Source: Selaginella moellendorffii (Eukaryota; Plantae; Lycopodiophyta). Taken from it: a stretch of 8,408 nucleotides of DNA. The notes beneath the pieces are model-generated. The model saw nothing but the letters and a program-made list of their open reading frames with translations. It was not told where the DNA came from and did no database searches. Both the position numbers and the translations under genes were made by a program. Where the stretch lies: NCBI RefSeq assembly GCF_000143415.4, contig NW_003314632.1:1-8408 (forward strand). Reading direction: 5' to 3'. Below, piece by piece: positions 1,186 through 8,408 of the stretch. How positions within the stretch are numbered: the first letter of the stretch is position 1; each line of letters starts with the position of its first letter.

Positions 1186-1269
1186 ACGAGGAATCCAAGC
1201 AGAAGCGCGATCAGGATAGAAAAAAAAAGAAAAAACTTCCATGCTTGTTGTAAAATTTATTAATCATCA

Positions 1270-1658
1270 TCCTTCTAAATTTAAAAGAGCAAGGGCAACA
1301 TATTCAATTGAGATTCTTTTTGAGCTTAATGGTGGAGATGAAGACACGTGGGAAAAACAGTTGAGAGTGGAATGTTCTTTTTTTTAGAATAAACCAGTTA
1401 TTTCGATGGTAAACTTGTTTTTTCAAGCATTTTTCCTGATTGATGAGAGCAGCGAATGTGCAAATGTGGTGAAATGCTGAATTACATAAGAGCTCCTGGA
1501 AAAATGCTTTGAAAAAACAGGTTTACCATCGAAAAAACTGGTTTACCCTAAAAAAAAAAAAACGTTACTGTTTTTCCCATCTGTCTTTATCTCCACCATT
1601 AAACCTGAAAAGAATTTCAATTGAATATGTTGCCCTTGCTCTTTTAAATATAGAAGGA
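1270..1658. repeat. Long inverted repeat (fold-back 1): arms ~1270-1437 and ~1498-1658, loop about 60 nt
   Basis: 1270-1360 (tccttctaaatttaaaagagcaagggcaacatattcaattgag...gtgggaaaaacag) is the reverse complement of 1568-1658 with scattered mismatches. 1391-1436 (aaaccagttatttcgatggtaaacttgttttttcaagcatttttcc) pairs with 1498-1544. Confidence 0.95.
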
Positions 1659-2741
1659 CTAGCAGAAACCCCAGCTCTGCTAGGAGATATAACATACCCA
1701 ATATAAATAAATCTTCTTTTCTATCTTTACAATGTTAGAAATTTTGATTGTATACAAGGTTAAATTTATCTAAGTTTTGCTACTATTCATCTCAAAAAAA
1801 ATGCATAATAATGCAATTAGATAATAATGCAAGTGTTGGGGAAGATAAGATCATTTTTAATCATCATTAAATTTGAATTTGAATTTTTTATTGCCTTTAT
1901 GGAAAGGTACCAAACCCTAAACACATAAACAAGATTGCTGCCATACTTTAAAAGCAATTAAATTTTCACAAAACTGAAGAACTATAGACTACCAAAAAAT
2001 AATAGGTTAGTTTGGAGAAATTATAAGTTTGATTGCATACTGGGCTAAATTTTTTTATCTGAACTGTAATCATGCCTCTAACTTTCATAGTTTACTAAAG
2101 AATAATAGAACCTTTATTATATGTCTGGTTTTACATTTAAAAATATACATAATTAAATCTACCTAGATATTCACACTACATTAGAGGTGTTAAAAAGACA
2201 AAGATAATAATTATATTAAAGATATAATGTTTGTATTAAGAAAAATCTGTACTAATGCTTTATGATAAAATTATGCATTCATGTCTAATATATGACATGG
2301 TATCTAATATGCTATAAGCAATTTCATACACATACAAATATCAAATCCATTTCTTAATAATATCTCAAAAATAAGAAAAAACCCTTTTATACTATCAATT
2401 AATCTTCTTGCTCATAATCTTACTGTAGTCTATCAGCAGCTTTACATGAGTTTTATTGTTTGTCTCAATATTTATACAATGATTTATTTGCTATCTTATA
2501 TTATATTATTATTATATAAAGGTAATAAAACATAAAATTCAAATTTAATGATGATAAAAAAATGATCTTATCTTCCCCAACACTTGTATTATTGTGCATT
2601 TCTCTGGAGATGAATAGTAGCAAAATTTAGATAAATTTAACCTTGCATACAATCAAAAGTTCTAACATTGTAAAATTAGGAAAGAAGATTTATTTATCTT
2701 GGGTATGCTATATTTCCCAGTAGAGCTGGGGTCTCTATTAG
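1270..2741. mobile_element. Non-autonomous Helitron-like termini in both orientations
   Basis: Plus strand: A|TC start at 1269/1270, and a 3' end at 2716-2742 made of hairpin cccag-tagag-ctggg then gtctctaTTAG|T. Minus strand: hairpin cctagc-aga-gctggg then gtttctgCTAG ending at 1659, followed immediately by TCcttctatatttaaaagag from 1658. A TC start, a GC-rich hairpin about 11 nt from a CTRR end, an A|T insertion site and no TSD are the canonical Helitron hallmarks. There is no Rep/helicase ORF in the window. Confidence 0.65.
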
Positions 2742-2742
2742 T
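1658..2742. repeat. Long inverted repeat (fold-back 2): arms ~1658-1900 and ~2516-2742, AT-rich spacer about 615 nt
   Basis: 1658-1900 (actagcagaaaccccagctctgctaggagatataacatacccaatataaataaatcttc...caagtgttggggaagataagatcattttt...ttgcctttat) is the reverse complement of 2516-2742 (ataaaggtaataaaa...gatcttatcttccccaacacttg...cccagtagagctggggtctctattagt). There are scattered substitutions and a small ataataatgcaa duplication in the left arm (1805-1832). Confidence 0.95.
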
Positions 2743-2838
2743 ACTTTTTATTTAAAGTTGCTATTTAAAAAGTTAATGGTTTCAAAATAAAGCATAATAA
2801 TGTGTTATATTTTTGAGAATGATACAACTCCACTAAGA

Positions 2839-2892
2839 AATATAGACAATAATAATTTTAATAATAATATAGACAATAACAATTTTAATATT
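2839..2892 (+). repeat. 27-bp tandem duplication
   Basis: aatatagacaataataattttaataat followed by aatatagacaataacaattttaatatt. Confidence 0.8.
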
Positions 2893-5249
2893 GATATTAG
2901 ATATTTAATAAAATATTATTATACCTCTGAAACCTTTCCAACCAGAACATTCTTTAGCAAAAGAACACATTTTATAACTCATAATGCATAAGATAACCAC
3001 TATGAAATTTAAATGATGAAGAGACAGAATACATGGGAAAGAAAAACATAGAATGAGGAAAGCTTATAGAAATAAGAGTTTAAAATATTAAATGACTGGT
3101 TTATTTGAACATCTCAAGAAATGGTTTTAGGCTGAAAAGTAATAGAACAGCTCCCAATTGAATACCCATGAAAGAAGCAGCAAAAATGTACCATTATGAA
3201 TTAGATTGAGGTTATCTAAATGCAGGTTGATGTTGAGAAAAATTACATGAATCCCAAAAAGTAGATATAATACATAAAGAAATAAATAGAGGATATCTTT
3301 GAAATTACATAAATTGGCTGTATTAAAATGTAATAAGAATTGAATGTGAACACAATTAAAAGTATAAATACAAAGATGAAATATTATAAAATATAAATTA
3401 TTATTTTTATATATTATATATTATATTCTTTTAATATGAATTTCAGAACAGTAATTAATGAAGAAATTTTTCTTATGAAATAATGTATGTTTCTAGCTAA
3501 AACTAAACTGTTATTACTAAATTAGTATTTAACAGAAAAAATATTTTGCTCATTTATTTCACAATGTGCCACCTTTTACTGGTGGAGGCTCGGTCTAATA
3601 CACATTCTCATCCTCTAGGTCTCAAACTTCAACTGTTGCATGATGAAATATCACCATTGTGATCATAGATTTGTGATGCATACTTGAATGGAGTTTGGGA
3701 GCCTTTGGTATGGCAGTCTATACCTACACAAAACTTATTTCATTTTCTCAACATTGAGAGTTCTTGCTGCAGTATATGGATGGGCTCACTGCAAGTAAAA
3801 TGCAAGTCAATCATCCTACTTTTCTTCTTCTTTTGTACACTAATTCCATGTTTTTTGTTGTAGATTTTCTATCATTACAGAATTGAAAGGCAGAGAGTTT
3901 ATGGTTGCGATATTCTTGCAGTGGTCTGGGTGGGATAAAATCCTAAAATTTTGTATTATATAGCTGTTTTACAGTTTTGGAGCCGATTCAAATATCCAGT
4001 GTTTGCTCAAAATTTCCCAGCGAGGAGCACATTGGTGATGGAGCAGCTTTGTGCACTGGCCAGTGAAAAAAAGCATAGATTACAACTTTACCTTTTTCTT
4101 GTAGATCTTGCATAACATTATAACCGTTAAAACAACACATATACAGTGTTCATGTAGAGAAGAGATCACTCATGAGAGAGACTTACAGCCTACTACCACT
4201 GCCAGTAACATTCCCTTCCAACTTCTAACTTCGAAACACTAATCTAAATTCTAGAATTTGAATGTAATATGAAAATAAAATATTTTCTTTCAAGACTTAT
4301 TGTCATATAAATTCAAGAAGTACATAATTAAATTTTTTTCATGTAGATAGTGTTTTGTAATTTTACATCAAGCTTAAAATCTCTGTCATCCGATTTTTAA
4401 AATTAATTATACCTAATATTTAAATATAATAGATATCTGAATATATAAATTTTCAAGCTTATATCCCTGTTTTCTCATAATTTTTAGAAAATTGGTAGAT
4501 TGAAGGTAATATGGATATAATAAATATTTTGTATAGTGGAGGATGTGCCACAAAAGACCAAGTTCATCAATACAACATCATAATCCATGATAATGTGTAT
4601 CTTCTTTTGACAAAATATAACTCTTTTTAAATTTTAATCTATAATTAATTTCCCTCTTTATGGAGTGAATAGGTTTTAATTACTCAATCTTCGTTAAATG
4701 TAATTTGTAAGGAAAAAGTTGTCTACAAAGCTTTAAGTATGATCTTTCCAGATCTCAATGAGTCCCATTATGAATACTTTATAGACTTACATAGCAGCAA
4801 CTATTACTTTTAAAAGACAAACAATAACCTCAAGTGTTGTGAACAGATTTCCAGAACTCCACCACCCGTAAGTAGAGCTTTAGAGTATTATATGGATAAA
4901 AAGTTTCTTTGCCCAATACCTTTAGCTAACAAACACCAATAGTATCAAAATATATTCTTTACTACATATAAGGGAAGAAAACTTTTCATAAACATGTCTT
5001 TTCCATGAGAAGTGGCCAAGCAGTCATATTAGTAAGACCAGTTTATTTTGCAGCCTTCAATCTAAAGCTATAATGCTTTTGGCAAACATGGAGTACGTTG
5101 TCTGGTTGCACACACGAATCCCTACCACCAAAAGCGTTGCATCACCCTTTAGGCCTGGAAAACCTTCTAGAGAAGAACACTCAGCGTCCTTTTGACCTGG
5201 ACAACTTCCTGTTGAAGAACATACACAATGGCAAGCTTGACTTATGATT

Positions 5250-5856
5250 TCAGCACATTGCTAATCTTGAAATTGTCTGCATTAATTTTAGAAAGATGGA
5301 GGAACATGGGGTCCTGAAAATGCCATTCACAGAATCCATAGCAGTGAAGGTTATATAAAATTTAAAGAAAAAGTACTTATAATGGCAGCCTCCAAAGACA
5401 CACATAGTTGGCTGAGTTCTTAGAATCTGGTGATGCTTGCAGGCTTCTCTAAACTCAAAATAAGGGAGATCACGACCCATGAGCGAAAACACTAAAAGTG
5501 TACCTGATAGTTACTTGCTGTAATCAGCGTGAATCTCATACCTTCTTGGAAACTCTGTAAATCATAGTTTCCAGCAAGCTCCTGATGCATTGTATTGCTG
5601 TGCAAACAGGACTTAGTTAAAAAATAAATGAAGACCTTATTTTTAACAACCTTATTGTCTTGTGCCAGAAGTGAGACAAATTAAATGCTAGACTGCAACT
5701 CTTCTTGATGATGCTGCTGTTCTCAACATTTGGTCCATGGTCATAAAAGCTATGCATGTCCTCCAAAGACCTGTGATGAGAAACATTTGTGGCAATCCTG
5801 CCTTTGAGTATCTTCTTGTCTTTGAGTTTCATCCTGTTGAGGCAGTGACTTCGCTC
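5250..5856 (-). other. Unidentified putative multi-exon coding fragment
   Basis: Candidate exons 5856-5651, 5597-5542, 5491-5377 and 5313-5250 are separated by GT-AG introns of 53, 50 and 63 nt. They splice into one open frame (ERSHCLNRMKLKDKK...HFWHKTISNTMHQELAGNYDLQSFQEVFSLMGRDLPYFEFREACKHHQ...GGCHYKTPCSS...LAMC*). No family recognised. Confidence 0.35.
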
Positions 5857-6460: not shown

Positions 6461-6483
6461 CTGAGAATCAAACGAAACAAATC

Positions 6484-7899
6484 TCGCCATGTAAGATTGC
6501 AGCCTGAGCAAAGACAGGCTTGTACGAGAAGAGCAGCCCACAGAAAAGCTTCCCATCGATGGACACTTCTAATATGTATCCGTAGTTGAATACGTCGCTT
6601 ACTCTAGCCTCGAACATCTTCTCGCCTAGCAGCTGAACATGAGCTTGAAACTCTGTAGCATGAGTTTGACAGGGAAAAATTGGAGAGGTCCAAGTTTTTC
6701 TGCAGATACCTCCGTGAGATGAAACCAAGCTCTTGTCCGCATCCCGTTGCTTGTCTAGCACGAATGGCGTGGCACAATACTCTTGCCGCCTTCTCTTAAG
6801 TTCCTTACGCATGGATAGCTTTGGTTCTGATGGATCTTTCCCCCTCAGCATCTCTTCACAGAAAAATGGCAACCATATTGTCAAGAATAGCAGCAATGTC
6901 AATTAAAGAAGAAGCCAACCTGTGTCGAGGAAATACATGTCATCCAGAGCTTCAAGCTCTTCGTTACATCCCCCATAGAAGAATCATATGCCTCGCTCTG
7001 TGTCCACGGAATCTCCTGCAAGGGAGAAACGTGGAGAAGGCCCGGGACCAGAGGGATTCGAAGTCGCCCAAACACCAGTTGCTACAAAATACGTAAAAGC
7101 CCCATGAGAGACTCACGTACTTAAGTCGAGAGTATGGACGTCATTGAATAGCTTGTGATCATAGGAGAATCCTCCAAACACGACGAGATACTTTCCATGG
7201 CTGATTGTTGTGTGCCTGGCTCTTAGCATCAGCTCCGCACCAGTCGTCTTTACCTCCCGCCATGCCATTGTTTCTGGAAACGCAAATGAATTCGCAAGTT
7301 TAAAACCAGCACAATGTATGTACCTGTGTCCAGAATATAAACGTCGTTTAGATAGGCATTACCACCGTCCTCGCCACCCATGACAACGAAACAGTTCTTA
7401 TAGAAAGAGCAGGTATGGCTATCCTGAGGAATAGGCGAGACTCCAGTGGTAGAAATCTTCTTCCAGACAAAAGTATCTACAGGAAAAAAAAAGTTTAGAA
7501 GAAAACAAGGAAGATAACAGGATATTACTTGTGTTCAAAACATGGAGGTCGTTGTAGTACTACTCCTCTGAGGGATCGCTGGATTTCCCACATCGCCCAA
7601 ACACGAACAGGTTGTCACCGATGAGAGACGTGCTATGTCCTTCTCTTGGAGCAGGAACATCACCAAAAACGTAAGGTTTCCTCCAGGTGTTGGTAGCTGC
7701 ATCGGATGATAAGAACAAGAAAAAAAAATCGATAGAACTCGGAGCCTACCAGTATCCAAAACAAAGAGATCGTTGAGCGGGCTGGTTCCATCGGTACCAC
7801 CAAACACATAGAGCTTAGACCTGACGGCCGTTGAGCTGTGGCTGTCTCGAGGAGAAGGGTGTGTTCCTTGCATCACAGGCTTGCTCCAGGTGTACGTCC
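6484..7899 (-). pseudogene. Kelch-repeat (galactose oxidase/kelch beta-propeller) gene resembling Arabidopsis At1g18610, 5'-truncated with nonsense codons
   Basis: Exons: 7899-7750 (TYTWSKPVMQGTHPSPRDSHSSTAVRSKLYVFGGTDGTSPLNDLFVLDT); 7696-7529 (PAPREGHSTSLIGDNLFVFGRCGKSSDPSEE*YYNDLHVLNT); 7476-7324 (TFVWKK...DSHTCSFYKNCFVVMGGEDGGNAYLNDVYILDT); 7273-7121 (YLVVFGGFSYDHKLFNDVHTLDL); 7081-6920 (GPSPRFSLAGD...GI*FFYGGCNEELEALDDMYFLDT); 6853-6710 (KLSMRKELKRRRQE); 6652-~6484 (GEKMFEARVSDVFNYGYILEVSIDGKLFCGLLFSYKP). Stops are TAG 7562-7560 and TGA 6986-6984. The exon for the first kelch repeat is absent. Confidence 0.92.
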
Positions 7900-7936
7900 C
7901 TGCGCGATCCCACCAGAAGAGTGAAGAACCTTGATT

Positions 7937-8408
7937 CTAGTCGTCGATGCCAACGTGAATCCCCTCGTTGTCCGAGACGTTGTCCCTGTAGTGAGCTCCA
8001 TCCACCATAGCCTCTTCGCCTTTCACTCCCATTCCTCGTCGCATTTCCCAGCAGAGCACGTCGATCTGTCGAATGCACCTGCGCAGGTGGATGCCGGCGA
8101 TTTTTTTCCCAGCGTAAGTCTGGAAGGCATCGAGCCTGTTCTCGCTGATCATCCAGCACAACTATGGCAACACAGAGAAAGCCGTGAGCCTCTCAAACCT
8201 TTGCAAATGGAGAAACAAACACAACCTCGTTGTAATAGGCTGGGACTTTCAGCCGCTTAGGATCGTTATCCAGTGCCGTTCCCAGGAGTTCTTCCGGAGC
8301 TGTCCAAAAAAGAACGCGTTAGAGTTTTTTCTAGTGTCTAAATCGAAGGAACTCACTCAAAGGTGTGGATAAGGAACAAATGTAGGTTGCGGCTTTTGGT
8401 AGGAGGTT
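7937..8408 (-). pseudogene. Three-exon coding fragment, possibly a degenerate class I terpene synthase C-terminal region (continues beyond the window)
   Basis: Exons 8408-8357, 8299-8226 and 8161-7937 (introns 57 and 64 nt) splice in frame: NLLPKAATYICSLSTPLTPEELLGTALDNDPKRLKVPAYYNELCWMISENRLDAFQTYAGKKIAG...MGVKGEEAMV. This resembles the kaurene-synthase-like pattern LPATY..GP.L.E...Y..L..L.S..GRLLND.Q.F.RE...GK, with an eroded NSE/DTE motif. The exon structure is better supported than the family call. Confidence 0.4.

Follow-up and report, generated by a model that had tools for sequence, protein, structure and literature searches.

A Helitron-type unit in a lycophyte that appears to carry an inverted copy of its joined ends

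We report that, at the single locus examined, positions 1270-2741 of an 8408-base stretch of lycophyte DNA (the whole stretch analysed, hereafter the window) appear to represent one plus-strand, non-autonomous Helitron-type unit, here referred to as P, the two bounding ends of which recur in its middle, inverted and joined to one another. The best explanation of the whole is, in our judgement, that P is a Helitron situated in a stack of Helitrons and bearing an inverted copy of its family's joined ends, a reading to which we give somewhat more credence than doubt. Since such a joint can be copied only from a Helitron with joined ends, the internal joint of P would then be the fossil of a joined-ends intermediate (a circle or a perfect tandem) in a lycophyte.

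Anatomy of P and the probable Helitron stack around it

Self-BLAST of the whole 8408-base window gave two significant self-matches and no others, each of them inverted (1270-1658 with itself, E 1e-85; 1643-1900 with 2756-2516, E 1e-73), and a separate repeat search of the window returned the same arms. A preliminary description of this DNA had placed two long fold-backs next to each other at 1658 without a spacer, and both searches agree with it in all coordinates. Specifically, the two fold-backs touch at 1658|1659 with zero spacer, and the minus strand across this point (1659|1658) reads ...GGGGTTTCTGCTAG|TCCTTCTATATTTAAAAGAG, i.e. a tail closed by CTAG followed directly by a head that starts with TC, which bears out the earlier reading of a minus-strand joint between Helitron-type ends. 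The same holds for the long inverted copy that had been assigned to each of these ends, one starting at 1270 (head) and the other ending at 2741 (tail): upon realignment the identity was 90.0% for the head arms (1270-1436 versus 1658-1498; 160 aligned sites) and 90.7% for the tail arms (1900-1659 versus 2516-2741; 225 sites), with K2P distances of 0.109 and 0.101, respectively, so both pairs are equally diverged. Moreover, a 20-nt head motif and a 20-nt tail motif each occur exactly twice in the window, with 0.01 occurrences expected by chance in either case. The arms differ at ~10% and therefore do not represent one sequence assembled twice; an assembly artefact was rejected on this ground.

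On the plus strand the order in P is head, loop 1, inverted head, inverted tail, loop 2 and tail (Table 1). TCCTTC follows directly after an A (1269) at the left end, and ...GGGGTCTCTATTAG stands directly before a T (2742) at the right end; both head copies begin with TCCTTC, the inner tail copy ends with CTAG, and the outer one ends with TTAG. The preliminary description had expected boundaries of the types A|TC and CTRR|T and no target-site duplication (TSD). In this locus A|TC is seen at 1269|1270 and there is no direct repeat at the flanks, while the tail expectation agrees with the inner copy and is off by one transition in the outer copy, which reads TTAG|T. Given that the outer copies, too, stop exactly at plus-strand boundaries of the Helitron type, we read 1270-2741 as a single unit. 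The head and the tail of P are not mutually complementary, i.e. there is no TIR, and the repeats pair each end with an internal copy instead. No TSD was found around 1270-1658, 1659-2741 or 1643-2756, and no 2-10-bp direct repeat was found beside either fold-back with every boundary choice tried; this absence of a TSD speaks against a TIR transposon, MITE or MULE. From the end motifs, the absence of a TSD and the stack context described below, we infer that P is a Helitron and that it has been mobile.

Table 1. Coordinates of the features of P and of the likely Helitron sequences around it (window positions).
Feature	Positions	Strand	Description
Two 3-nt stubs of older heads, TCA TCA	1264-1269	+	Preceded by host A at 1263; read directly
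Unit P	1270-2741	+	1472 bp; non-autonomous Helitron-type; A|TCCTTC...CTATTAG|T; no ORF of note, no TSD
Head arm H+ (5' end of P)	1270-1436	+	90.0% identical to reverse complement of 1498-1658
Loop 1	1437-1497		61 nt; unique, with just weak similarity across its centre
Inverted head copy H-	1498-1658	-	TC at 1658-1657 on the minus strand
Inverted tail copy T-	1659-1900	-	CTAG at 1662-1659; ends at 1659, fused directly to H-
Loop 2	1901-2515		615 nt; unique; 24-25% G+C
Tail arm T+ (3' end of P)	2516-2741	+	Ends with TTAG; 90.7% identical to reverse complement of 1659-1900
Sub-terminal hairpin	2716-2730	+	CCCAG-TAGAG-CTGGG; 11 nt before the 3' end of P
Helitron #2, likely older, remainder	2742-3598	+	From head without TCA (TACTTTTTATTTAAAG...) to CTAA tail
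Helitron #1, likely oldest, start of remainder	3599-3625	+	TACACATTCTC...; CTAA|TAC junction at 3598|3599

The hairpins at the 3' ends are short. In the outer tail the stem is G+C-rich and 5 bp long, the hairpin being weak (z -1.2) and its counterpart in the inner tail having one mismatch; for the inner copy T- an 8-bp terminal hairpin is predicted. These alternative stems are each intact in one arm only, with z values of -1.2 and -1.9, close to those of shuffled sequences. A 20-bp unit (AAAAAACAGGTTTACCAT..) is repeated ~2.3 times inside each head arm (1375-1426 and 1509-1560), and the Helitron head region thus has an internal direct repeat of its own. No ORF longer than 65 aa lies within 1270-2741, and loop 1 and loop 2 (~60 versus 615 bp) are unrelated in self-BLAST. 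Rfam and tRNA scans of the fold-backs gave no family and no tRNA, and a tandem-repeat scan gave nothing relevant. Scans of metagenome contigs with the exact head and the exact tail patterns gave no match, and a protein search with the joint-spanning 65-aa ORF, for ORFs on other copies, gave no candidate.

The second fold-back had been described as stopping at CTAG. The motif boundary is exact, but the likeness continues beyond it for ~16 nt (1643-1658 against 2756-2742, 13/16 matches), a score that ~0.3% of same-length, T-initial words from the window's AT-rich DNA also reach. In other words, the first 16 nt past 2741 resemble the head of P (13/16). Such a resemblance would be expected from a related Helitron head after 2741, and would be the reason why the second repeat seems to pass CTAG.

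Other features at the two flanks of P point in the same direction as such a head. On the plus strand YTRR|TAC is present at only two sites in the window, 2741 and 3598, and both are located 9-11 nt after a G+C-rich 5-bp hairpin; at the second site the order is hairpin (CCACC-7nt-GGTGG), 9 nt and CTAA, followed by TAC, and on these motifs 3598 is a likely Helitron tail. To the left, TCATCA has three plus-strand occurrences in the window (~5e-4 per position), one of which stands directly before the head of P, and the TCA stubs are as many as the tail|TAC junctions (n = 2 for both). The G+C content is 48% at 900-1263, 33% and 26% in the fold-backs and 23% at 2742-3598, and it jumps from 21% to 36% exactly at 3598|3599. 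Together, we infer that P is the most recent arrival in a stack of head-targeted Helitrons. A point against this is that its head, TCCTTC, is unlike the TCATAC heads that seem to be usual in the stack.

In such a stack, a RepHel protein would mobilise P in trans by a nick at A|TC, and the P strand would be peeled off 5' to 3' with a stop at the hairpin and CTAG. P would have landed three letters inside the head of an older Helitron (TCA|TAC), which itself would earlier have inserted into the head of one older still. By serial tip insertion of this kind, each arrival would shift one TCA stub to the left and leave the rest of the older head after its own tail, so two nested head insertions would give two TCA stubs to the left and two tail|TAC junctions to the right. 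The empty site without P would read ...TTAATCATCA|TACTTTTTATTT....

Within the remainder of Helitron #2 (2742-3598; 23% G+C) there is a 27-bp tandem repeat at 2839-2897. Further away, at 5548-5585 on the plus strand, a hairpin with an 11-bp stem (one mismatch) is located 8 nt before CTGA|T; it is possibly a further tail of a Helitron on the plus strand, and may mark where the oldest member of the stack ends. The DNA at 5548-5585 may, however, belong to the minus-strand gene to the right.

Origin of the inverted joint and alternative explanations

The inner segment of P comprises ~403 bp, in which 242 bp of tail are joined base-for-base to 161 bp of head, the whole being inverted. A complete Helitron inserted upside down would be read as inverted tail, body and inverted head, while the order here is inverted head and then inverted tail, touching each other; because the order is reversed and the pieces touch, the fragment spans a tail-to-head joint. 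Such a joint is found only in a Helitron circle or in a perfect tandem or tip insertion, and the segment was therefore most likely reverse-copied from a template of this kind. The progenitor of P would have consisted of head, loop 1, loop 2 and tail (~1.07 kb), and it would have gained an inverted copy of a sibling's joined ends through filler-DNA break repair or two template switches, a step that can be placed before or after insertion at the present site. The equal divergence of the two arm pairs fits one event in which one contiguous joint was copied. Moreover, when P is drawn as a circle it has just one large inverted repeat, that of the end-joint, and the two spacers are 61 and 615 nt long; the linear view turns this into two abutting fold-backs.

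One of the two models in the preliminary description was close to this, i.e. a tandem dimer or circle the junction-spanning middle of which had been inverted. Taken literally, a tandem dimer with its middle inverted is refuted, since it predicts identical loops and tail arms of ~500 bp, whereas the loops are unrelated (~60 and 615 bp) and the tail arms measure ~240 bp; the core of that model, an inverted copy of joined ends, stands. We also rejected an inverted triplication over a plus-strand joint, with no tail present to the left of 1270 and no full head to the right of 2741, and two whole minus-strand insertions, with no tail remnant in 1437-1497 and no head remnant near 2515.

According to the other earlier model, the joint belongs to a tandem pair of large, cargo-carrying minus-strand Helitrons, one ending at 1659 and the other starting at 1658, each repeats its own end as a long, inverted sub-terminal copy, and what look like boundaries on the plus strand are there by coincidence. 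All recognisable coding sequence in the window is indeed on the minus strand, i.e. the strand of the inner joint, with PPR sequence to the left and Kelch sequence to the right (see below). However, the Kelch repeats are ordered over at least four consecutive open segments in a host-gene-like manner, and Helitrons do not feature sub-terminal repeats as long as 165-240 bp. The model also gives no reason why each inverted copy should stop precisely where the head begins or the tail ends, and it leaves the framing by A plus (TCA)2 and by TAC unexplained. It is in particular the exact plus-strand boundaries at 1270 and 2741 that disfavour it, and we regard it as unlikely. The absence of a 2-10-bp direct repeat at the flanks of either half bears on another alternative, in which a fold-back or long-TIR transposon of 389 bp (MITE- or MULE-like) happens to adjoin an unrelated one of 1083 bp, and TC and CTAG are there by chance. 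Each half does have the shape of a classic fold-back with arms of 160-240 bp and ~90% identity, and both halves have the length and A+T richness usually seen in MITEs and non-autonomous MULEs. On the other hand, the termini of P presumably match no usual hAT, Mutator, PIF, Stowaway or CACTA start, and it would take a series of coincidences to produce the exact abutment, the consistently oriented Helitron ends and the TCA/TAC context, which leaves two adjacent TIR elements only a slim chance.

The joint could also have been built in place, from a simple Helitron into which two minus-strand relatives inserted, the later of them exactly at the tip of the earlier, followed by deletions that spared just 161 bp of a head and 242 bp of a tail. 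Opposite-orientation self-insertion has been proposed for composites in Fusarium (PMC5148889). This route needs at least two insertions and at least two deletions, the outer edges of the inner segment (1437-1497 and 1901-2515) have no remnant of a minus-strand tail or head, and the equal divergence of both arm pairs would be a coincidence. Its probability is low, much like that of the tandem minus-strand pair or slightly below it.

Predicted single-strand fold and relation to known systems

As single-stranded DNA, P is predicted to fold into two long helices, 1270-1658 and 1664-2736, with 148 and 204 arm-to-arm pairs, respectively; the MFE of the fold is -349 kcal/mol, and both halves are far below their shuffled controls. 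In the predicted fold the 5' end of P pairs with 1658 and the 3' end is able to pair with 1659-1661. Because the inverted head and the inverted tail are contiguous, the 5' and 3' ends of P would be held side by side on one complement, and single-stranded P can be modelled as a nicked dumbbell. A fold of this type might aid the joining of ends, hinder unwinding or feed hairpin RNA into silencing. That the inverted joint is functional, acting in the excised single strand as a splint and giving a dumbbell ready for sealing into a circle, seems to us very improbable. Were it so, the result would be a double-stranded circle with a valid end-joint on each strand, so the family could integrate from either strand, giving two isomers that differ only in loop orientation; the minus-strand joint could also launch read-through into the host DNA flanking P to the left.

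With Helitron1 of Kapitonov and Jurka 2001, in the account given of it in PMC4778049, P shares the TC start, the CTAG-type end, the insertion site between A and T, the lack of a TSD and the lack of coding capacity; the small hairpin that Helitron1 has ~11 nt upstream of its 3' end has a putative, weak counterpart in P. It departs from canonical Helitrons, which are without long inverted repeats, in that ~27% of P consists of its own two ends copied in inverted orientation. Precise joints between Helitron ends have been described before: TC is joined precisely to CTAG in Helraiser circles (PMC4778049), adjacent maize Helitrons have a precise CTAG|TC joint that arises from insertion at the regenerated A|T (PMC2267711), and Helitron tandems in Myotis are attributed to Pritham and Feschotte 2007 where PMC4778049 and PMC2267711 refer to that work. 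The joint in P is the same: at 1659|1658 CTAG passes directly into TC, and no host base intervenes. The joints in those systems link co-oriented whole elements or close a circle, whereas that of P is in an inverted internal fragment of 403 bp. For the FoHeli composites of Fusarium, the model is self-insertion in the opposite orientation (PMC5148889, Figs 7-8). Both these and P are single Helitrons holding the termini of a relative in opposite orientation; a whole inverted insert would read tail, body and head, while P has head and then tail with zero spacer, i.e. a permuted joint.

Helitron2/Helentron elements have asymmetric terminal inverted repeats of 12-15 bp and insert between T and T, and we know of none from land plants. 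They have in common with P that an end is repeated, inverted, inside the element. P differs from them in its A|T target, in arms of 160-240 bp and in that its ends are paired with an internal joint; fungal cases of Helitron2/Helentron are described in PMC5148889. Replitrons have short direct terminal repeats (PMC10288648), and P as a Replitron was rejected since it has no direct terminal repeat.

Long inverted duplication of transposon sequence is also seen in P and in Mu killer of maize, and in both cases dsRNA is conceivable if the repeat is transcribed. Mu killer is reportedly an inverted partial duplication of MuDR that silences its family through hairpin RNA. The repeat in P consists of non-coding ends and holds no transposase gene.

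In the literature searched we found no description of a Helitron whose middle repeats its bounding ends in joined and inverted form. Maize, bats and fungi already provide examples of head-to-tail joints and of Helitron stacks; the mirrored joint, at this one locus, is the new part. If the architecture is common to many copies, it would represent a Helitron form with long fold-backs, the rule that Helitrons are without inverted repeats, which annotation tools use, would be blurred, and questions concerning end joining, strand choice and hairpin-RNA silencing would become testable. If it is a single scar, P would be a neat but minor case of filler-DNA repair inside a transposon.

Flanking genes

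To the left of the stack, a truncated piece of PPR coding sequence, in which one PPR repeat is clear, lies in the minus-strand ORF at 7-672. Its identity to P0001, an annotated Selaginella moellendorffii protein of 133 aa, is 98%, from which we judge the DNA to be of this species; P0001 is probably the other-haplotype allele or a recent paralogue. Since 133 aa is far below the lengths of the other PPR matches of the search (196-379 aa), the ORF probably represents only part of a gene. Kelch repeats are found to the right, likewise on the minus strand, where they succeed one another in the proper sequence through at least four consecutive open segments (~7120-7940), and 6470-8320 on this strand looks like one coherent multi-exon Kelch gene rather than a mosaic of unrelated fragments. 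A 144-aa open segment on the minus strand at 6471-6902 gave no Pfam match and no usable ESM Atlas match. The DNA between the PPR fragment and the Kelch gene is A+T-rich. Finally, at 1165-1185 on the plus strand TATAAAA is followed by AAACCCTAG (telo-box-like), ~85 bp before the TCA stubs; this stretch resembles a plant promoter, and the Helitron stack may be situated just downstream of it.
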